A stretch of 64,000 nt of DNA from Gracilinanus agilis (lineage: Eukaryota), in NCBI RefSeq assembly GCF_016433145.1, contig NC_058130.1, positions 133,190,018 to 133,254,017 on the forward strand. The letters run 5' to 3'. A model generated the notes under the pieces. The model ran no database searches. It was not told the DNA's origin and saw nothing but the letters and a program-made list of their open reading frames with translations. Positions 1,037-47,915 of this stretch are shown here, in pieces. Position 1 is the first letter of the stretch; every line of letters starts with the position of its first letter. The translations under genes were made by a program, and so were the position numbers.

Positions 1037-16003
<14,967 letters not shown>

Positions 16004-16753
16004 ACACCAATGGAGGGAGCAGGACCTTTGGGTGTCCCTTCCTGACCCCCTCCCCCCCAGACCAATCTGGGAAGGGGGAGGGAGGAAGTATAGGGAACTG
16101 GACCCTCCACTTCCAGCTCTCAACACCTCGTGCTTCCCCCTTCCCCTCCTTGTAAATATCCTAAGACCCCATTAGGGACAATAAACACCCTGGAGACCCT
16201 CTGGTATCTAAACCAGCATCCTGCCTCCCAAGTCATTCTTTTTCTCTGTTGCCAAATGCAGGGGATCCTTCTTCTGCCTCCTGTATCCATCATCTGGCTC
16301 CCAAACCCCAAAATACAGGGCTATCCCTTGGTAGCTCAGCACTAGGGCCAATTGTAAGGGGAGAGGGCTGATATCCCTTAGCCCAAGTCATGACCCACTT
16401 GCCCCTGACAGCTACCACCAGGTAATGAGCCCCAGGGTCAATCTCAGAGGGCTTGATACCATTTTCCCTGCCCTCTGGTTGCTTTCATTGCTTGCCAGTT
16501 CCCTGGCCACACAATTTCCTGTCCCACCAGCACTGTCCATTCTTGGCCTTCCCTTTTGCTCTACCCTTGCCCACTGCTCCCTCAGGCCAGGAGTTCCAGC
16601 CAGTCCCTTTCTTCCCAAAAGCCCTAGTCCTTCTAGGCAGAGTAAGAGTAGGGAGGGCTAGGGAGATGACCCCTATCCCCTGCAGTCCCTCCCTCCAGGT
16701 TTCCCCAACTCTACCCTTTGCTCCTTCTGGCTTCTGGATTTTTGTTTTCAAGC

Positions 16754-16759
16754 AATAAA
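16754..16759 (+). terminator. SEZ6L2 polyadenylation signal AATAAA
   Basis: Canonical AATAAA about 750 nt after the stop codon, followed by a T/GT-rich element (ttgtaact...gtgttatg). Confidence 0.7.
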
Positions 16760-17261
16760 AAGAAAATCACCATTTGTAACTGGGCCCAGTGTTATGATGG
16801 GGGTACTTTATAAGAGGGAAGAGGGAAGAGCAGTGTTTCTTGGGAGAATGACAAAACCAAAACCATACCTCCCACTCTTATGGAAGTTGAGTAGGCTCAG
16901 TTGAAGCTTGGAGAGAATATTCTTTGAACTCATCTAATGGCAATAGCCCTTCAGAGAGAAAAGAGACTGTGAGAATGAAAAGGGATCTTCCAAATCATCC
17001 AGTCCAACCACCATATGAACAGCTGAGAAAAAAGAGGTCAAGAAAAGGAAAGGGACTTGCACAAAGTCACACAATGACTTATAGGAGAATCTAGAAACCA
17101 GGTCCCCTGACTCTCATTATAGTTAGTGTTCACTGCATTCCAACATAATGGCTGTAGATGCTCAAAGCTCTCTGGTCAACCCTCAGCTCAAATGTTTAAA
17201 TGGAGGGAAACTTTGGGAGAGATAATCTAAAACCAGAGAATTTAAAGGAATAGATTGGCCA

Positions 17262-17450
17262 TGGAAGGTGGCTAAATAGCCAGGTCTACAGTTGGGAGAA
17301 CCTGGGTTGTAATATGGCCTCAGATACTTCCTAGCTGTGTGATCCTGGGCCAGTCACTTAACCTCAATTGCCTAGCCCTTACTACTCTTCTGTGTTGGAA
17401 CTGATACTTAGTGCTGATTCTAAGACAGAAGGTAAGAGTTTAAAAAAGGG
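17262..17450 (+). mobile_element. Older marsupial SINE copy
   Basis: Same family motifs. Confidence 0.75.
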
Positions 17451-17871
17451 GAATAAATAATCAAAATAGCAGATTATCAATAACACCGGATTAAAAAACC
17501 AGCAGATAATCTACAATATGGGATTGTCCATAAGCACTTAACATTCTGTTTGGGGATGAAGCTATATGATGCTAATGCTTAAGATCTGCCTTTCTTGTGA
17601 TGCCAAGCTTTGGTGAATGCTACTATAAAAAAGGAATATGCCTTTTTACAGCAAACTGGTTGTGGAGGGGTAGACTATGGTTCAATGGTAAAATGATGTC
17701 GTAGACAATCTACCATGTAGAGCATATACACCTGAGGAATTCCTCAAAGAAGGATGAAACCGCTATTCCCTTCCCTTCCTTGGGCTAGTACCATATATCA
17801 TCCTCTTCAGAGAAGATCAGACCAGAGTATTGACTGAATTGTGGGGAGGGGAAGGCGGGGGTCCCCGTCTC

Positions 17872-17877
17872 TTTATT
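17872..17877 (-). terminator. Poly(A) signal AATAAA of the antisense 198-aa gene
   Basis: tttatt on the + strand, about 80 nt downstream of the TGA at 17958-17960. Confidence 0.7.
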
Positions 17878-17957
17878 AGTCTCTGGTTCCTGATGGTGTC
17901 ATGGCCGGGCTGTAGAGGGTGAAGAAGTATGTCACTTTGTCTGAGAGAGTCTGGGCT

Positions 17958-20429
17958 TCAGGGATGATGATCATAGTTAGGAGTCCTCCCTGGGACTTTG
18001 TCAGTTGCATTATGAAGGTTAGGGCCTCGAGCTACATTCTAAAAGGGGAAGAGAGAGAGAGAGAGAGAAGGAAAAGGGGAGAGAAGGTGTGAGCTCCTTC
18101 TGATTGGCCTATAGGGTTGTTTTTTGGATCAAGAATCCAAGGCAGAAGAATATCTGCCTCTAAAGCATTCTAAGGGAAGTACTCTTTGTCCTTTGAGACG
18201 GGAAAAGTTACCTGCTTATTTTTTCTATCCTATGAGTTTCTCCCCCTATCTTTTTCTGACCTTCTGCCCATTCCTTTCTTATCAATACCACAAATCTAGG
18301 TCTTATATGCCTGAACAAAAAAAGAAAAATCTTAGTGGTAGAGGGATTTTACAAGGTCAGCTAGTCTAATATCCCCTAATGAAGAAATCTTACCTCTGAC
18401 CTCTTTGAGAGATGGTCATCCAGTCTCTGCTTTAACATTTTTAGTGACCTGGAGCTTTTTGAGGCAGCTAGATGGTAGGCAGTTCTGATAGAAAAATCTT
18501 CCTAAATGGAAATTTGCCTCCCTGTCGCTTCCTCCCATTGATTCCAGTTCTTCCTTCCAGAGTAACATGGAATACAACTATTCCTTCTTCCACAGCCCTT
18601 CAAATCTATGAAGTCAGGTATTGTGTCTCCCACTGTCTTCTTTCTTCTAAGTTAGGTAGATTTATTTTTTCTAAGAGCTACATGGAAGAATGGTTTCCAG
18701 GCCCATCCCCCATCCTGGTCACTTTCCTCTGGGTGAACTCTACCTTGTTAATGTACCTTTACATCTACCTTAAAATTTTGCACCCACAGTTCAAAGTACC
18801 TTGACATTTCCTTGCTCTTTCCTGGAGGCAAGGGAAGAGAGGCTTTCTGGTACAGCAGGAGGCCTACGGACAGGCCGTCGGGTAGTCAAAAACATGGTTC
18901 CACCTAAGGCCTCCTCCTGCCGAACAGTCTCTACCTAGGAAGGGCAAGCAATTAATGCAGAATTCTATCCCAGGCATTAGCCAGCCTGAGATAGAGTAAC
19001 GGGATCAGGTTTTCTCTCACCTGTTTGTGTTGGGATGGCTCTTTGTCTTTTGACTTCAGCAATTTTCCCTTATCATCTTTGAAATCTTCAACCTGGAGCA
19101 TTACCAGGAAGAAGAGGAGGTATGTTTGTTTCTGAGGTTTGGAGTAGAATCTTTCTTATCCTGGGGAAGGGGAATTCCTGTAGTTTCCTCTTTGAGGTGG
19201 GAAGGTACAAGAATCTTCTCCCTTTCAGATCCCTATAGTCGACCACTTCTCCTTGCTCTAGGTGAGGCCCACCCAGTAGGAAGAGAGGGGATTCAAGAAC
19301 CCTATCACATACCATCTCTCTGGATGGCAGGAGATGAGTTTTATTTCTGGTCCTGTTTCTGTCAGAACTACAAAGAAGAAAGGAAGAGGGTGAAAAAAAT
19401 TGCACTCCCTGGTGGAAGGCAGCCTAGCTGCTCCCTCTTGGAAACATCAGAGTTCCCTCCTACCTACTAGTTCTACACAAAATTTCTTTCTCCAGGTGAA
19501 TTCTCATTTCCTGCTTCCCTTGGGATACCAGACCCTTCTTCCATGTAGGATGTAGCAGAAAGTCTACTAGACTTGAAGTCTGAAAACCAGAGTTCAAGGC
19601 CTGACTCTGACACTTTTCTAGACCTGAGATCAAGTCACTTAGATCTTCTGTTCCAGCATCTATCAAATGGGAAATACATTTGTTCTATCAACCCCATAAA
19701 GTTCTGATAAGGAAAACAAATTGTAAAGCACAATATAAAAATATTATTTACTCTTTCAACTTTCTCATACCCTGAGATGAGATTTTTCCCCTTAGAGCCT
19801 CTTACCGAGTATCCGTGCCCTTGGTCCTGGTGGTTGGCAGCACTGAAAACATAGGCCCTGGTTAGAAAGGTTGCTTCTCTCCATGACCAGAAAGGGAAGA
19901 AGGGATTGGAATGGCTAGTCACAGGGGGTGGGAAGTGAGGTTGAGGATAAGGAGATGAAGCACAAATGCCTGCAACTTTGTATGTAAAAGAGATGTTAAA
20001 TGGAAGTGGTTTTTAAGAGAGGACCTGCTAGGGTTCAGAATGGGTTCCTAGGGAGCAGTCTTAGGGGCTGGAGTACAGGGCACTGAAATGTTATTAGAGC
20101 AGGGATCACCGTGTCGGGACATCTGAGTTCCCTGGTCCAGTTTTTTCAGTTCCTTGGGCACGTCAGGGCTCATTGGGTATTGGGCTCCCATCAGGGCCTC
20201 ATTGGTAAGTTCTGTGCTGACCCGGGCCAAATACTCCTCAGACCTGGTCATAACCTTGCAGGAGGGATGAGAGTTGAGGGAACCAGGGTCAGAAGGTTGA
20301 CTCGATGGGGTGGGGGTGGGGCTGTCCCCTTCCCTGCAGCCCTCCCACAGCACTCACCGCTGATACACCGGAATTGTGCGTGAGCCGAGTGGTCTTTTTC
20401 TCCTGAGTTCCTGAAGGACTGGGTTCCAT
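17958..20429 (-). CDS. Uncharacterised 198-aa protein, 7 coding exons, head-to-head with CDIPT (positional equivalent of human CDIPTOSP/CDIPT-AS1 and mouse Cdiptos)
   Basis: Minus-strand exons 20429-20358, 20254-20110, 19842-19806, 19367-19313, 19092-19021, 18934-18800, 18038-17958 (72+145+37+55+72+135+81=597 nt). All introns are GT-AG, phases 0,1,2,0,0,0 are mutually consistent and there is no internal stop. Kozak gagATGG with an in-frame upstream TAG; AATAAA about 80 nt after TGA. Confidence 0.78.
18049..18068. repeat. (GA)n microsatellite that forms the polypyrimidine tract of the antisense gene's last acceptor
   Basis: On the minus strand: tctctctc...ttccccttttag|AAT. Confidence 0.85.
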
Positions 20430-20799
20430 CTCCTTGGGATCAGGTAGAGTGAGGTAGAGTATTAAGATGGGAAGCTATCCCATGGTTTTGTTTTGTTTTT
20501 GTTTTTAGGGAGGTGGGCAGGGCAGAATCTGAAACCATCTCCACTACCAGTTAATTTTCACAGTTGTCTGGATGGACCCCTGGGAGTTTCTTTCTCTGAT
20601 TGAATAACACATAAACTGCCCCCCTTTATTTTTCCGACTAGAGAACATCCAGACCATCCCATGTCATTTCTTCCCGCCCCCTCTCACCAACTCTATCCTC
20701 CTCCCTCTCCTTAAAAAGGTCCCTTCGATTGCTTTCTCCTCTTCTTCCCTCAGCCTCAGGGTCCTTCCCCTAACCCAAGGGTCTAGGTCCTCATTGTGC

Positions 20800-22420
20800 G
20801 GACCTTAAGTTGCGTAGAAATTGCTTAAGGCCCGGGAGGGAAGAGACGGGGTGGTCTTCTTAGTTTGCCCCGCGGTTGCTGTTGCTATGGGTACAGATCG
20901 CTGAGGGTAAGGGAATGGAAGGGGGAGGGGAAGAGTGGCACGGGGAGGTTGCCCCGGGAACCAAGCAGGCGGAGGGATCTTCGCAGTGCGTTACTAGGAG
21001 ACAGCCCTTTCGAGTTCTAGAAGTCAAATCTGAAGTCATCTTTTTTTTTTCCTTTATTTTTTCCCGGCATCCCTTTCTTTCTTCTCCGCTCGGGCTTAAT
21101 CGGCTGCAGGAGACACTCTCAGCTTTTAGGACGAGGAGGACTATTTATCCCAGCAGTGGGCTTGGATCTTGGAAGAGTAGTGTCCTCCCAAGGGCCAGGG
21201 GGCGATCTCTCGAGTCAGCTCCCTCTAATCTAGGGCTTCTTCTTGACCCTCTAGCTACCACCTCGATGCCCGAGAGTGGCTGAGACCAAATGAGGACGAA
21301 AAGGCTAGGGAGTCGGGGTTGGAGGAAAGGTATGATTCTGGACTGAACCAAATGCACCGCTAGATAGGGGTCTTCCAGGATCGGATAGGCGGAATACGTC
21401 TCTCTCTTAGTCCTCTCTAAGAAAATACACTCACATAATATTAAAAGTAGTTCTCTAGTCTTCTTAACTAGCTTCTCTTCCATAACTTCCTCCGTTCTAA
21501 GTTTACCACTCACTTCTAGTCTCTGCGCGAACTCCCTGTCCAACTCTAAACTTGGTACGATCCAGTCTAGAGAGGCGGAGGGAAGAAAAGGAAAAGGAAG
21601 CGGGCCTTTCTTAAAGGGATAGAAGCCATTCTTTTGGCCTTCAATTTTGCGTCAACAAGGGCGGAAGAACTGATTTCAGTGACACCGGGGGCCTTCCCCC
21701 CGGCACAGCTGGTGTTGCGACGACAGGAAGAAGGGTGGAGAGGAAGGTCTTAGAACCGGTCCCGGGGCCCCGAGCGAGGGGCATAGGAGCACCTGCACCC
21801 TTGCAGGAGGAAGGAGGGCGAGGCGCCAGCGGCTGCACATCTGGACCGGCTGATGACTGGGACGGCTGGGGGGGCTTGCACATCTGGGTCCCGCTCGGGG
21901 CGCGGGCCGCTGGGTCCACTGCAACTCCAGAGCGGCTGATGCGCTGGAGCAGAGGGAGGGGCTGCACAGCTGCGGCGCCGGGACGATCCCGGGGGCGGAA
22001 TAGACAGCCGAGCGAGAGCCGGGATCACACTAGCTCGGAGCCAGGGCTTGCCCAGCTGACCAGGCGGGGGCCCGCGGCGTGAGCGGTTGGGGACCGCTCT
22101 CCACCTCACTTCGAGAGGCCATCCATTCCCACCCTGCCGAGATGCCGGAAGAAAACATCTTTCTGTTCGTGCCCAACCTCATTGGTGAGTCCAGCGTGCA
22201 CAGACCCCTAAGCCCAAGCCCTGGGAAGAGCGAGGGCGGAGGTTGGCCGGGGAAGGGGATTCCTTTCATCCCAGAGGTTAGGGATTCCAACGCCAGCGCG
22301 ACCCCCACAACTTACGTGACCTTGGCTGGTGGCTTCCGGTCCTCAGACAACCTCCCCCTTCCCCCCCTTTGTGTGGGGCATGGTCGGACTCCTTGACTTC
22401 CAGTGAACCTTTAAAATTTT
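20800..22420. promoter_or_regulatory. CpG island / bidirectional promoter region of CDIPT and the antisense gene
   Basis: High CpG density against a CpG-depleted background; X-box-like GTTGCTATGGGTAC at 20881-20894; CRE half-site CGTCA near 21650. Confidence 0.75.
21514..21566 (-). other. Candidate 53-nt non-coding 5' exon of the antisense gene
   Basis: Strong polypyrimidine acceptor cttccttttccttttcttccctccgcctctctag and GTGAGT donor; no ATG inside. A matching acceptor (cccAAG|gagATG) lies at 20433/20432. Confidence 0.4.
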
Positions 22421-24766
22421 TTTGGCTCAGTTATTCCAGTACTTTCACCCCTCTGTTTCCTTCCCTCAGGCTATGCCCGGATCCTCTTCGCCTTCATTTC
22501 TTTCTACTTCATGCCCAGCTGTCCTTTGACAGCCTCCTCCTTCTACCTGCTTAGTGGGCTCTTGGATGCCTTCGATGGACATGCGGCCAGAGCCCTGAAT
22601 CAAGGTGACTGCATGCCTAGCCTTTATTCCTCTCAGAGACCAAGAGGCCAGCAGTTAACCCTCTTTCCCCAGTTCCTTCCCCCACCTCCCTGGGGCCTCA
22701 ATTTCCTCACTTCCTAGAGTCAGGACTTTGGTTTGTGAAAGGCTCTGCTTTGGAATGGGGTGACACCATCTCCACTGAGGACAGAACCAGAAGAAATAGG
22801 CTGGCACTACTGCTTCAGGAAAGATTTAGATTATTAGCCTTAGGGAAGAACTCCCTGGTTGTTAGGTTGTAAAACAGAACCAAGTGAGCAAGGTAGGTTT
22901 GGGGCATCTCTTTTCCTTTTCTTCGAGGCATGGGGAGGGAGGTGAGATAGCCTCTTGAGGGTTGTAGATGTCTTTTGCTCCTCCTCTTTTTTTAAGATTT
23001 TAGGTTATTTGCCCTAAGTTCAGGGTATTTCTCTACCTCTGGCTTTAATGTCTGATTCTGTCTACCCTGGTTTTATCTCATACTTTTGACATGGTTCAAG
23101 ACTTAGTTAGAACATAGGATTGTAAGGTTTTATACTAGGAAGGATATTTATTGACCATCTAGTCCAGTGTCTTTGTGTACCTATGCTATTCAGCTCATAG
23201 AGCAACTTTCCAAAGGAAACTCAAATAGTAAAGTTGGGATTCAAACCTAAATCTCTGGCTGGAGATCCAGGGCTCTCTTCATTGCCTTGTACTGTGATAT
23301 ACCTTGACCCTCTCATGGATCAGTATCTCACTTGGCTGGCTATTTCTGACTTGTCATCTCTGAGCCCAGGAGAGAATGAACACTTGATTTCTCAGTTCCT
23401 ATACATCTGTGGATTTGGAGCAATGCTGGGCATGCTGATTTCAGCCAAACTTCAGTCATTGATCTATTCTCCCCCATTGTCTTCATCCTGAACCACTGAC
23501 TCTCTTCTTACCTCCTTAATATAGGGACACGGTTTGGGGCAATGCTGGACATGCTGACTGATCGATGTTCTACTATGTGTCTGCTGGTAAACCTAGCTCT
23601 GCTGTACCCTCGGGCCACCCTGCTCTTTCAGCTCAGCATGAGCCTGGATGTTGCCAGCCATTGGCTGCACCTACACAGGTTAGGTTATACCAGTTGCCTT
23701 TGTGGGCTGAAAAATTGTAATCTTGGGTGTGGCCCAGCATTGGCTGAGTTACTTCTGTAGTTACTTCCAGAGGCATGGTAGCATGTAATTGGGGCGAGGC
23801 TGGCAGAAAGAGGAGCTGCTTACTTAGCTGGGGAATGGACTTTCTTCTTGGGGGCAAGAGAGAGTACATGGTTCATGGCCAATATTATCCAGAGAAATAT
23901 GAACAATAGGTTGGGGAGGTGGAGCAGAATAGGAATTGGAATGGGAGAGGTATACATGATCTTTTCATGTTTTCCCCTCTAGCTCAGTGGTCCAAGGTAG
24001 CGCAAGCCACAAAACCATTGACCTGACAGGGAATCCTATCCTTCGACTCTACTATACTTCCCGGGTGAGTCCCAATCCAGGTCATACTCCCCCCACCCCA
24101 CCCCCCTTTCTCATTATCCAGCCTGCATCTTCATGCCATATATCCCATTTTTTTTTAAGTCTTAATTGGTTTTGGAGTGAATGTGGGTGAGCTTGTGTAG
24201 GTACTCCCTCTGACCCAGTTGTTCTCTTTGTGTGTGAGGTACAGATGGGAGAGGGAAAGAGAAAAGATGTGAGCCCACTGTTCAAGTCAGAAACATGAGT
24301 TTTGCCTTCTTCCTGCAGCCAGTGCTATTCATCATGTGTGCTGGGAATGAAATTTTCTACTGTCTGCTTTACTTGCTCAGTTTCTCAGAGGGACCCTCAG
24401 GTATGAATCCAGAGGTGATGCTACATGGGGGCCAGGAGATCTGGGGACAAGATGCATGGAGTGGGAGCTGGGGGGTGGGGGAGATACAAATTGGAGAAAT
24501 GACTGACTTGATTAGATACTAACAATAAGCCTTTTGATTGAATTAAATTTCTTTTCTCCTTCTTTCCTCTTCTATCAATCCCTTCTCTATATTGGATTTT
24601 TTTTCCCTCCTTTCTTGCAGTGGGTTCAATAGGTCTGTTCCGAGTGGGACTCTGGGTCTCTGCTCCTATTGCTTTCCTCAAGTCCCTCATCAGTGTTGTC
24701 CACTTGGTCACTGCTGCACGCAATATGGCTGCCCTGGATGCTGCTGATCGTGCGAAAAAGGAATAG
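22142..24766 (+). CDS. CDIPT: CDP-diacylglycerol--inositol 3-phosphatidyltransferase (phosphatidylinositol synthase), 213 aa
   Basis: Exons 22142-22184, 22470-22604, 23525-23678, 23983-24064, 24319-24400, 24621-24766 (642 nt), all GT-AG. MPEENIFLFVPNLIGYARI start; CDP-alcohol phosphotransferase motif DAFDGHAARALNQGTRFGAMLDMLTD; ends AADRAKKE*. Confidence 0.97.
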
Positions 24767-27624
24767 CCCTGATGTCTTCTCTGCCTCCAGCAAACTTCCT
24801 GCCCCGTTCCTCTCCACCATGCCTTGCCCACCATCCACCATGGTGCTGTTATGCCCTCCCCCAATGAGGTCAGCCTTTTATATAGCATAAGGCATATCCT
24901 CCACAGTGCTGTGTTCCTTCCACTCCCACCTCATGCTGTCAGAACCTCTTCAAGGATGTCACTATTCTTTATTCCCACTCCCACATGGTGTTACTTTCCT
25001 TCGATGAGGGTAGAACCCAGACATCAGATGAGGGTTCTCTTTGTGGAGGCAATGATGAAGTCCCAGCCACAGGAGATGAGGCCATGGCCTCCATGACTTG
25101 GGGATAGCCATAGTCCAAGGGTGACTAGGCTCCTTGAGAGAAGGTATGGAGGCACAGAGGTGTGTCCTTGCACTGAACCAGGCAAGGGGGCTGTTGTTCC
25201 AGTCCCAGAAGATGGTGTGACCCATGCAAGTTAGCATGGTGCTGCTGTGTTTGAGGGAGATGGTGTGGGGGCTGGCTCTCCACTAGGGGCCAAACTCCTC
25301 TCCTGGTCTGAATATGTCTGGAATTGGAGGAGTCTGCCCAGGAGGGAAGGAGGCTCTCTGGATCCTTCCCTGTCGTACTGTGTCTCATGATGTGTAATCT
25401 GGCCTTGAGGCCTTGATGATAAAGGAGGAAACTTCACAATCAGAACCCAGGCTCCTGTCTTCACTCCCTTGACTGTTTCCTTAAAGTGGGGGGACTGGAT
25501 AAATCACTTAAAACTTAGGTACAAAGAGAGCTCACTTCCCTTCACCGAAATTGTGTATGTCCTGGGGTACCTCTCCCCAACACCACCCCTTAGGTGGAAG
25601 GCTCTTTCCTTTCAGCTATCTAAATACTTTAAGACCTTTATACTCAGAGAAATGTCTTATGATTCCTCCTAGCCCCATGGGACCCAAATTATTGCCTATG
25701 GTTCTAGGCACTTTTATTTAATATTCTTATATTGTCAGCTCTCTCCTTGTGCCCATAGGCCTTATCTCCTCTATGAGTCTGAACCTTTGGGGGGCAGAAA
25801 TACCTTGATATCAACACGTTTTAAATAGCCTTGAATCCCTGGAGAGTCTGAGCTGGCAGAAGAGAACTCCTCAGGAAGCAGGATAGAATATCAGAATATC
25901 AGTGGAGCTAGATGGGACCTCGGAGGCCAGCTAGTTCAACCCTCTCATTTTACAGATGAAGACTGTGAGGTCCACAGGGTTAAAGGGAATGAGACTTAAA
26001 CAAAAGGCTTCTAACTCCAAAACCAGTGCTCTATTAGACTGTTTGCTGACTATGGAATGTACTCATGGGCAGTTCATTTCAGTTTTCTTTCCTTCCATAT
26101 CAGGCATCAGGAAAATGTCAGTAATTGTACTTCTTATTGGGGTGAGGCAGGGTGGGGTAAGATAGGCAGTTGACTAGATTATATTGTAGCTAAAGCTATG
26201 ACATCATTAGCTGAGGAGAAAGCTTAATTCTGGGCCTGTAGCATGCACAACAGGGTAAGATTGCCCCTCAAACTCCCTAGGGTAGAGGTAAAATGAATTC
26301 AGGACCATGTACTTGAGTTCTCCCCCCACCCCCACCCACCTCACCAAGTCTAGAGATCTCTTATTGACTTAGCTGCAGCCATGGGAAGGGAAAGCTGGTG
26401 TTGGTCTATAGGGGCTCTAGCACCCCTAAAATCACTATTCTCTGAATCCTACCTCTGTCACATGCTACATTGGGCCTCAGTTTTATGACCTGTAAAATGA
26501 GAGGTTTGAGCTAGATGTTCCCTATGGTCCTTTCAGCTCTTACCCTTCAATCATCCTAGGCTCCTAAAGAGCACTCCTACAAACCCAAACAAGAGGGCTA
26601 AAGCTATGACTATATCATCAGCTGAGGAGAAAGCTCAGAAGGCGAGGAAAGGGTGGGAAGAAGGCTTCAAGTGGAGGATTCTTCAGGGAAGGTGAACCAA
26701 TTTGTTCTGGTCAGACCAAAAGGAAAAATCTTTCAAAAAAACAAAATTTATAAAAAATGCTGTATGTGGCCAGACTGTGGATAAGATATTGAGACCTAAC
26801 CCCACTCAGATCAAATGACAAGTTATCTGTGGGCAGAGCAGATGACTCCATTTCCTGGCCATCTGGCAGGGACATAAAGGACAGACCTCTCTTGGCTAGA
26901 GGCCCAAGCAAATTGGGACCCAACCCACTAAATCCACAAGGTAATCAAAAGCATGTCTGACATATGGTGTCTTCAGTATCGCAAAGCTGGGAGCTTTGGG
27001 GAAGGAATTTACCTTCCCTAGATCACAACAGAGGTTGGAATTATAAAATTTTAGGATTGGATAGGTCATCCATCCAGTCCAGCTTCCTTTCTGTCCCCCC
27101 GTCCCCCAAAACAGTTTTTCTTTGGCAAAAAAGATGGATCTAAAAATGTAGAAAGTATGTATTTCACATTAGTAATAACTAATTGTGGAGGGAAAAGTAA
27201 CCAATTTGGGGAAAAGTCTTCAATCTGAAAGAAATCACCATCATAAAAAATCTGGTTTAGCACCATTTCTGACCTGTAAAGCATTTTTCTACACATTAGA
27301 AATATTAAATCCAACCCACAGCTAAAAATACCTACTTTCAACATGTATTGAAAGAATTGTGGCAGGACTTAGTTCTGGCAAAGCTTGTTTTTCCTGGTCT
27401 TTTCTTTATTCTAAAAAGATACAGATGAATAGAAAATTATCTTTCCCTGCCCTCCAGCTCAGACTGTGGCTAATTCTTTGGGTAAGGATCTGGAGATCTG
27501 GGCCTGTTGCTCGAGGGTACATCCAGTATCTTGCACCTTTAACACCTTAATCATCAGCAAAAGGAAAGCCATAACAAGGAGCTGAAAACCTTAGTAATTT
27601 TTTTAGAAAAGCCAAATTAAAGGA

Positions 27625-46500: not shown

Positions 46501-47443
46501 GGTGGTCATAAACAAAAGAAAGGAGGTGAGAAAGTATGAGTATGTTTGGGGAATGACAATTCACAAAGAATACCAAAGAGCAGAAGTGGAGGGATTAGGG
46601 TAGGTAGGGCAGGAAGGAACTCCTTGCTAATTCAGCCCCCTTTTAGTGTCCACAAATACCCTTCACCCATAGTTCCTCTGTCTTCTAGCCCTAGCAGAGC
46701 AAAAGGACACAGGAGATATTCTAGGTACCTGCTGCAGCTCCTCCCCAGGGTACAATGGGAAGGGGTCCTGGGCCAGCCGGATCTCCAGGTCTGCATGCCG
46801 AAGTCGTGCTTGTCCTGTAGCTTCCTCAAATAGCACGAAGCCCTCTTTATCCCGGGCTACAGGGTTGGCTACAATGCAGTAATGTCGTGGTGGGACTGTC
46901 ACCATACGTGATGGGGGAAACAGTACCCTGGTGAATAGAGGCAGAGTATAAGCGATTGTAAAGACCTTCCCTCCTCCTCTAATTCTTGTAACCCAGCTAG
47001 ACATATCTAGAGAAAGATAGAGCAAGCCAATGCTATAGCTGGAGGATGGAAAATAAGACATGAACTCCAAGATAACAAAAAATTAGAATAAGTGAGCAAG
47101 AAATGTATTCCTCTAGTAGGCCAAGATCCTTCTGCCTGCTCACACACTGACTAGAGAGAGATATCACTCCTAGCTGGAAATAAGAATAGAGATAAATGAT
47201 CTGGAGAGGGTTAAGCTAGTTCAACAAGTATTCCTTCTCCTCTTCCGCCCCCAAAATTTCCCTTTTAATATATTTTTCCTTTCTAGGACTCAGGGGTTCC
47301 TGATCTCATACCAACCTTTCATTGTCCTGCCGGATGTAGGTTTTGGGCCCAACCACCACACGGGATACATTGCTATTCTGGTCAAGCACATGGATGAAGT
47401 GGTATGGGGGGATTCGGATGATGGAATCTCCTTTATTTGCCAT
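28597..47443 (-). CDS. MVP: Major vault protein, 867 aa, 14 coding exons
   Basis: Minus-strand exons 47443-47316, 46927-46729, 43419-43299, 41028-40897, 40369-40275, 39247-39011, 38921-38625, 35960-35716, 35579-35382, 34343-33957, 33537-33421, 29958-29832, 29390-29202, 28728-28597 (2604 nt), all GT-AG and in frame. [18 protein letters not shown] start, vault repeats ([15 protein letters not shown]), shoulder domain [23 protein letters not shown], cap helix, and C-terminal [16 protein letters not shown]. Confidence 0.97.
30519..30715 (+). mobile_element. Young opossum SINE1-type element
   Basis: tRNA-derived head with A/B boxes, CORE and A-tail; TSD AAGATAC(A/G)ATGAAAGG at 30503-30518 and 30716-30731. 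Confidence 0.9.
31497..31680 (+). mobile_element. Young opossum SINE1-type element
   Basis: Perfect 16-bp TSD CAAAACCAAACAGATC at 31481-31496 and 31681-31696. Confidence 0.92.
36851..37050 (-). mobile_element. Young opossum SINE1-type element
   Basis: Long T-tract tail; TSD CTG(A/G)GTCAAAGTTTT at 36839-36853 and 37051-37065. Confidence 0.9.
37355..37506 (-). mobile_element. Older marsupial SINE copy
   Basis: Same family motifs, degenerate. Confidence 0.65.
37560..37875 (+). mobile_element. L2/MIR 3'-end fragments
   Basis: cccctattagattgtgaggttcttgagggtaggg...gcttagcacagtgtttggcacatagcaggtgcttaa; a second copy at about 37815-37875. Confidence 0.6.
39410..39532 (-). mobile_element. 5'-truncated SINE copy
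   Basis: Tail and CORE present, tRNA head missing. Confidence 0.75.
39851..40050 (+). mobile_element. Marsupial SINE copy
   Basis: Full-length family motifs. Confidence 0.8.
41750..41940 (+). mobile_element. Marsupial SINE copy
   Basis: Family motifs. Confidence 0.7.
42216..42811 (+). mobile_element. L1 3' fragment inserted into a minus-strand SINE
   Basis: L1 ORF2 end (attggggaatggctgaacaaattgtgg). The SINE 3' half is at about 42098-42215 and its 5' half at about 42812-42868. Confidence 0.7.
45287..46216 (+). mobile_element. 5'-truncated marsupial L1 (ORF2 C-terminus + 3' UTR + polyA) with an extra 3' segment, in MVP intron 3
   Basis: Encodes [27 protein letters not shown]...[11 protein letters not shown]...MEYY, the L1 ORF2 end. 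Perfect 16-bp TSD AAAGTAATAGCAGGTG at 45271-45286 and 46217-46232. Confidence 0.9.
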
Positions 47444-47915
47444 GGTGACTTCAGAGTTAGGAAGGCAGGAATCAGATCTGGTTAAAACAGGATCCCTGGA
47501 GTAGGGAGAAAGAATACGAATGAATGAAGGAAAGAACCACAGGGAGCAAAGGAGTAAAATGAAAGGAGGGAATGTGATGGAGCCATGAATAAATGTTGGC
47601 GATTCTCACAGAGAGACACCGCTCCTCTTGGCCAAAGGTCACGTACAAAGCTGAGCTGCTATGGTGAGGTGTGAGTACCTTACCTGGAGACAAATTCAAG
47701 GGGTATTTTTGTAAGCCTCTAGAGATGTTTATGTTCTGTCTCTGGGAAAGATTTAGACCTCTTGTACCAACCCTCCATAAATGAAAAATCTTTATGTCTT
47801 CTCACAGGGAGATGTTTCACAAATTTACATATATCTTGATATACGGATCTAATTGCCTAATAGAATTCTCTCATTATAAAAGTTTGCCTCTTTGTCATAC
47901 TAAACAGAGCTTATG

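Follow-up and report, generated by a model that had tools for sequence, protein, structure and literature searches.

In this study, a 64,000-nucleotide (nt) stretch of the genome of Gracilinanus agilis (contig NC_058130.1, positions 133,190,018 to 133,254,017 of the forward strand; hereafter the window) was analyzed, and a seven-exon gene was characterized on its minus strand. We are highly confident that this gene is protein-coding and that it is the didelphid ortholog of the gene known as "putative protein T-ENOL" or "CDIP transferase, opposite strand" (mouse Cdiptos, human CDIPTOSP). We lean slightly toward the following history: a mammal-restricted orphan gene paired with the CDIPT promoter has an ancestral form of seven exons and about 200 amino acids (aa) that persists in marsupials and monotremes; eutherians dropped a cassette made of exons 5 and 6, and catarrhines later truncated the core. 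If this is true, opossums would be an accessible system in which to study the full-length protein, including a C-terminal half kept by no eutherian. The retained longer ancestral form, with 69 residues lost in eutherians, is mildly new; for this genome it would mean a refinement of the annotation (198 aa versus 105 aa).

The seven minus-strand exons were spliced in silico into 597 nt, giving a 198-aa frame with no internal stops. Their lengths in the window are 72, 145, 37, 55, 72, 135, and 81 nt, with entry phases 0, 0, 1, 2, 0, 0, and 0. Every exon is preceded by AG and followed by GT, except that the last one closes with a stop codon (TGA, 17958-17960) in place of GT. A preliminary description of the window had proposed this same join and product, both of which were reproduced exactly, and the signals that it listed were recovered as well. 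The strong start context is GAGATGG (purine at -3, G at +4), and the in-frame upstream stop is a TAG 16 codons before the ATG. The AATAAA expected about 80 nt after the stop lies 81 nt past the TGA, at 17872-17877 on the minus strand. Four CpG dinucleotides fall within Arg codons of exon 6, the surrounding DNA being CpG-poor (observed/expected ratio 0.04-0.2), and a competing splice acceptor near 19160 is present in the sequence. The parts of the gene are listed here with the ratios of nonsynonymous to synonymous substitution rates (dN/dS, or w) obtained for them.

20358-20429, minus strand: coding exon 1, with the ATG and residues 1-24; conservation is lower here than elsewhere in the core; marsupial length 72 nt, monotreme length 84 nt; dN/dS 0.42-0.79
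20110-20254, minus strand: coding exon 2, residues 25-72, with the conserved helix and the DQGTQ motif; 27 homologs were found from this exon alone; dN/dS about 0.3
20183-20245, minus strand: segment of exon 2 encoding residues 28-48, the sole confidently predicted helix
19806-19842, minus strand: coding exon 3, 37 nt, phase 1, with the start of the Thr/Arg-rich motif; 37 nt in five of the five species mapped
19313-19367, minus strand: coding exon 4, 55 nt, phase 2, with the SDRNRTRxKxHLLP motif; the last exon in common with eutherians
19021-19092, minus strand: coding exon 5, 72 nt, phase 0-0, in marsupials and monotremes (72 nt in all five species) and not in eutherian proteins; dN/dS 0.13-0.25
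18800-18934, minus strand: coding exon 6, 135 nt, phase 0-0, in marsupials and monotremes; 126-138 nt across species, with in-frame length changes only; dN/dS 0.14-0.47
17958-18038, minus strand: coding part of terminal exon 7, 26 codons and the TGA; acceptor in common with eutherians, labile tail; dN/dS 0.75
17872-17877, minus strand: poly(A) signal AATAAA; TAATAAAGAG is invariant in opossum, Dromiciops, devil, and sloth

This structure lies far beyond chance, since the exon sizes and phases are repeated in Dromiciops, Tasmanian devil, platypus, and echidna. Two further features of the transcript were noted. An upstream open reading frame of two codons (ATG GGA TAG; 20475-20483, minus strand) is located in frame 45 nt before the start codon, and would matter only if the 5' untranslated region is unspliced here. 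The frame of exon 4 is open across the entire intron 4 (19091-19423, minus strand, 111 codons), so that retention of this intron would give a long alternative tail, not an early stop.

Exon 2 (48 aa) was used alone as a query against 1.84 billion representative proteins. It recovered 27 relatives at E < 1e-3, with E values from 1e-19 to 7e-4 (1e-19 for other marsupials, 2e-9 for platypus, and no better than 4e-7 for eutherians); the ten matches looked up by name were all marsupial, monotreme, or eutherian. A query with a full-length marsupial relative returned 49 matches and the family profile 180, and the named ones among the matches listed were all mammalian. The relatives carry the database names "putative protein T-ENOL," "CDIP transferase, opposite strand," "Cdiptos," and, in Swiss-Prot, ENOL_RAT ("Testicular enolase domain-containing ..."). 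The predicted protein has the core features of the T-ENOL/CDIPTOS family, namely the helix motif, the DQGTQ motif, the GTDTRSDRNRTR-HLLP motif, and 13 of 13 family-invariant residues. The exon-intron layout and phases also agree with the family (exons 3, 4, and 5 measure 37, 55, and 72 nt in the window, Dromiciops, devil, platypus, and echidna), as do the location between CDIPT (divergent) and SEZ6L2 (convergent) and the signature of purifying selection on the reading frame. The earlier proposal that a conserved protein-coding gene with an intact frame occupies the place of mouse Cdiptos and human CDIPTOSP is upheld. The gene is already annotated and is not new; it is a conserved mammalian gene without functional characterization in the literature searched. 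Searches for Cdiptos, CDIPTOSP, CDIPT-AS1, and T-ENOL found no functional study, only gene lists, tables of copy number variation (CNV), and one CTCF-insulator study with mouse Cdiptos as a reporter.

Coding constraint was estimated over exons 1-6 by the Nei-Gojobori method with bootstrap, the species outside the window being Dromiciops, Tasmanian devil, platypus, and echidna. The dN/dS ratio was 0.20 for the window versus Dromiciops, 0.36 for the window versus devil, 0.33 for Dromiciops versus devil, and 0.26-0.28 for the window or Dromiciops versus platypus and for the window versus echidna. Bootstrap intervals excluded 1 in every one of these comparisons (P(w>=1) = 0). As a control, the same aligned nucleotides were read in the two shifted frames, which gave ratios of 0.64-1.65 and 9-13 stops. 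No nonsynonymous changes separate the window from Dromiciops in exons 3-4. Ratios for exons 5 and 6 were 0.13-0.47 with no stops, and for exon 6 the bootstrap P(w>=1) was <=0.040 in marsupial and marsupial-monotreme pairs. Relative to Dromiciops and devil, exons 2-5 are gap-free with 83-96% nucleotide identity (90-94% in exon 2 and 96% in exon 4); the introns show 76-81% identity and 10-17% gaps, and exon indels are all multiples of three. On these substitution patterns, the frame is a protein-coding one under purifying selection.

It could be argued that the locus produces a long non-coding RNA (lncRNA) or antisense RNA, as the human locus is taken to do, and that the 198-codon frame is a chance or decaying one. 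The human counterpart is named a pseudogene and listed among lncRNA isoforms, and the nucleotide conservation of exons 1, 6, and 7 is no better than that of introns. However, the in-frame dN/dS is 0.20-0.36 and the remaining two frames give values of about 1, the 62 species have 13 residues without any variation, exon phases are conserved through the whole depth of Mammalia, and exon lengths change only in frame. We regard a non-coding locus as extremely improbable, and the selection tests on the aligned exons already contradict it. Neither a disrupted frame nor neutral evolution, the marks of a pseudogene or lncRNA, was found for the window gene: its frame is intact and w is significantly below 1.

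For the protein-coding gene, exon sizes were obtained by mapping annotated proteins back onto four loci. The coding exons measure 72/145/37/55/72/126-135/84-87 nt in marsupials and 84/148/37/55/72/132-138/96-102 nt in monotremes. Because the seven-exon layout is common to both groups, a gene with seven coding exons predates the monotreme-therian split. The monotreme orthologs (platypus LOC114807248, echidna LOC119942764, 209 aa) have seven coding exons, of which exons 3-5 are identical in size to those of the window and exons 5-6 are present; the platypus gene is located between CDIPT and SEZ6L2. They are about 54% identical to the window protein; exon 1 has 12 nt more, exon 2 has 3 nt more, and the tail differs. 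No non-mammalian relative was found among the named matches listed in the profile search, which covered a protein database, vertebrate genomes not being searched directly.

Family alignments of 24 and 62 members revealed a core of about 100 aa, encoded by exons 1-4 and common to monotremes, marsupials, and eutherians. Thirteen residues are invariant in 62 species (S29, E30, E31, L33, S37, L40, E43, A44, D64, T67, Q68, T82, and D83). Eutherian proteins stop 10-20 residues past exon 4. Exons 5 and 6, each a multiple of three with phase 0-0, form an in-frame cassette of 207 nt (69 residues) that occurs only in marsupials and monotremes; by the outgroup criterion, this distribution indicates that the long form is ancestral and that the cassette was dropped from the eutherian protein. 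Eutherian T-ENOL/Cdiptos (rat Swiss-Prot P0DO93, NP_001406450.1, 119 aa) occupies the same genomic position, as confirmed in sloth, and has the exon 1-4 core with 40-53% overall identity, but lacks the exon 5-6 cassette and has a C-terminal tail of about 10 residues in two alternative forms. The beginning of marsupial exon 7 can be aligned with one of these tails (Asn-Met-Pro-Gln-Ser...). The terminal part of the sloth locus aligns with the last exon of marsupials and its poly(A) signal, and the 3' flank matches sloth at E 9e-8. At the sloth locus no match to exon 5 was found, and one weak collinear match to the second half of exon 6 was detected (E 0.046, L005:8355-8432). One anteater isoform ends with a related KKEHGN stretch; in Xenarthra, this stretch and the sloth match may be what is left of the dropped cassette.

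In human, CDIPTOSP (formerly CDIPT-AS1) is located between CDIPT and SEZ6L2 in 16p11.2; it matches the window gene in position but is regarded as a pseudogene or a non-coding RNA. A protein of 105-160 aa is retained by most eutherians, New World monkeys and lemurs among them, and the core is kept in the capuchin and loris proteins. The langur and gorilla models break off directly ahead of the invariant, basic RGTDTR motif. This truncation fits the naming of the human locus as a pseudogene, the human locus being known here by its listing alone. Since the gene lies in the interval matching the human 16p11.2 CNV, where its human copy goes by the name of pseudogene, a phenotype of this gene in mouse or opossum would not necessarily carry over to human.

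The preliminary description had gone further and presented a hidden gene of therian origin, lying antisense to CDIPT, that this marsupial had retained and human had lost. In favor of such a previously unrecognized gene, the frame is intact here, the langur and gorilla copies are truncated, the human locus is named a pseudogene, and exons 5-7 are not in the annotation traced to this genome. Yet RefSeq annotates the gene in at least ten marsupials, two monotremes, and many eutherians, the monotreme orthologs point to an older origin, the coding exons are divergent from CDIPT, and most eutherians retain the protein, which makes this account very improbable. The gene was not hidden, as a Monodelphis domestica model has the same seven exons and the G. 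agilis gene is annotated in a 105-aa form with only exons 5-7 missing, and platypus and echidna orthologs with the same exon layout take its origin back beyond therians. The antisense claim needs correction: the coding exons are divergent, with start codons 1713 bp apart, and only one Ensembl M. domestica model was seen to start from an exon inside CDIPT. Loss in human agrees with the pseudogene name and the truncated langur and gorilla models, but it would be a late event, most eutherians keeping the protein.

The ortholog closest in form is M. domestica LOC103092874 isoform X2 (RefSeq XP_016279678.1, "uncharacterized protein"). Like the window gene, it has seven coding exons and encodes 198 aa, of which 195 are identical; the differences from the window protein are T17S, G21T, and A183S. 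For G. agilis, RefSeq holds a "putative protein T-ENOL" of 105 aa (XP_044533302.1), which is identical to the window product over exons 1-4; its last residues, Ala-Gly-stop, are encoded by a small exon within intron 5, and exons 5-7 are not part of it. Its coding sequence spans 1453 nt, equal to 20429-18977 in the window, and its distance to the CDIPT ATG is 1713 nt, again the value in the window; it is probably the annotation of this very locus. Two alternative 3' ends of the coding region were located as follows.

18977-18985, minus strand: alternative terminal piece of three codons (Ala-Gly-stop) in intron 5; the acceptor at 18985 is followed by GCTGGCTAA, and the product has 105 aa
17817-17909, minus strand: part of the last exon reached from an alternative acceptor, giving a 30-residue tail that starts PGHDTIR; isoform X1 of M. 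domestica and isoform X2 of devil have this tail (devil model P0029 maps here)

The acceptor at 17909 is the one to which M. domestica isoform X1 corresponds. The Ala-Gly-stop exon at 18985 was considered as the counterpart of the eutherian terminal exon and rejected. Exon 7 was preferred, since it aligns, together with its 3' flank, with the terminal region and poly(A) signal of sloth.

These models raise the question of whether only the 105-aa product, from exons 1-4 and the piece at 18977-18985, is made in this species, with exons 5-7 untranslated or confined to minor isoforms or to targets of nonsense-mediated decay. Among the recorded products of the G. agilis gene, none is longer than XP_044533302.1 (P0143), and the window accounts for it exactly; eutherian proteins likewise end about 10-20 residues past exon 4. 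Against this, the length (72 nt; 126-138 nt) and phase of exons 5 and 6 are maintained across monotremes and marsupials, and the two exons evolve with dN/dS of 0.13-0.47 and no stops and are included in the M. domestica, Dromiciops, devil, platypus, and echidna models. We consider an exclusively short product improbable; the comparative evidence supports a predicted 198-aa product for this genome, as opposed to the annotated 105 aa.

The C-terminal tail differs among marsupials. The devil counterpart of exon 7 (L002:5307-5396) has a stop at the fourth codon (Asn-Val-Ala-stop), which explains the other terminal exons in the devil models. The wallaby, wombat, and koala models read exon 7 in a shifted frame. 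The tail of the last exon is, on this comparison of models, evolutionarily labile. A homolog of the alternative terminal coding exon of the devil, Antechinus, sugar glider, wallaby, and koala models (REELDSMEG...LKQRLDDHL) was observed at about 18416-18553 on the minus strand. In the window it has an acceptor-like AG and an open frame of 45 codons, the second half being frame-shifted relative to devil. The possibility that this Australidelphian exon is repeat-derived was dropped, a 24-mer from it occurring only once in the window.

The predicted product has a mass of 22 kDa, an isoelectric point of 9.9, a grand average of hydropathy of -1.15, no Cys, no Trp, and 19% Ser and Thr. For Pfam, ESM Atlas, and AlphaFold2, a 98.5%-identical protein (P0039, identical to the window protein over the helix) was used in its place. 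AlphaFold2, run with 62 sequences, gave a single helix at residues 28-48; residues 31-40 had a mean predicted local distance difference test score (pLDDT) of 93, and every 10-residue block outside residues 21-50 averaged below 65. Helix residues S29, E30, E31, L33, S37, L40, E43, and A44 are invariant in the 62 mammals. A Pfam scan of seven family members found no family at E <= 1, and a PDB profile search gave only two chance-level matches (E 0.86 and 1.1) and no enolase. In the ESM Atlas there was no neighbor beyond the protein's own family and no structure for the protein. Enolase membership, which the name "testicular enolase domain-containing" implies, was rejected, no enolase domain being found in the Pfam or PDB profile searches. 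An AKAP-type PKA-anchoring helix was not supported by sequence pattern: only 8 of the 62 members fit the R-subunit-binding pattern [AVLISE]xx[AVLIF][AVLI]xx[AVLI][AVLIF]xx[AVLISE] at the helix, and the didelphid sequence is not one of them.

As to function, the protein may be intrinsically disordered except for the conserved alpha-helix at residues 28-48, and could act as a small binding or adaptor protein whose helix docks on a partner. The invariant Thr/Arg-rich motif (approximately TxGTDTRSDRNRTRxKxHLLP, residues 79-99) might provide a further contact, be a target of phosphorylation, or direct the protein to the nucleus. Each of these steps is suggested with low confidence, and a mechanism of this disordered, adaptor-type kind, taken alone, seems to us doubtful, if possible. 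The word "testicular" in the Swiss-Prot alternative name hints at possible expression in testis.

Several points weigh against the identity, coding status, and role proposed here for the gene. The dN/dS of exon 7 is 0.75, which is indistinguishable from 1, and the reading of this exon varies among marsupials. No annotation other than the short form of 105 aa was traced to this genome, and the predicted inclusion of exons 5-7 here rests on orthologous models and selection signatures. Conservation of the helix is not limited to one face (permutation P = 0.14). The functional statement is made with no Pfam family (E <= 1), no PDB match below E 0.8, no Atlas neighbor outside the family, and no paper found on the protein.

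The gene is arranged head-to-head with CDIPT and tail-to-tail with SEZ6L2. SEZ6L2-like CUB/Sushi exons are found on the plus strand at about 2900-15000 of the window, the first coding exon of CDIPT is on the plus strand with its ATG at 22142, and an MVP-like sequence (MVP N-terminal exon) is on the minus strand at about 47300-47600. The coding exons of the gene have no overlap with CDIPT, and a CpG-rich interval occupies the space between the two start codons (ATG-ATG distance 1713 bp). The CpG observed/expected ratio is 0.43-0.70 in 20501-22500 versus <=0.27 in all other 500-bp bins of 15001-26000, making the interval at 20.5-22.5 kb a probable promoter region used jointly with CDIPT. An Rfam search of 16500-22500 gave no match. 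Two features belong to this upstream side of the gene.

20501-22500, no strand assigned: CpG-rich interval between the divergent start codons, probable promoter region in common with CDIPT
24796-24888, minus strand: alternative upstream first exon, as used by model A0A5F8G8G2 of M. domestica (Ensembl); it falls within CDIPT but on the other strand; tblastn identity over 29 of 31 residues, E 5e-16

In the M. domestica model, the first exon of A0A5F8G8G2 (24796-24888) splices to exon 2. As this first exon lies inside CDIPT, some transcripts of the gene may be truly antisense to CDIPT. The order CDIPT, gene, SEZ6L2 is kept in Dromiciops, Tasmanian devil, tammar wallaby, wombat, bilby, platypus, and sloth. 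The gene order around the locus is that of the human 16p11.2 interval.

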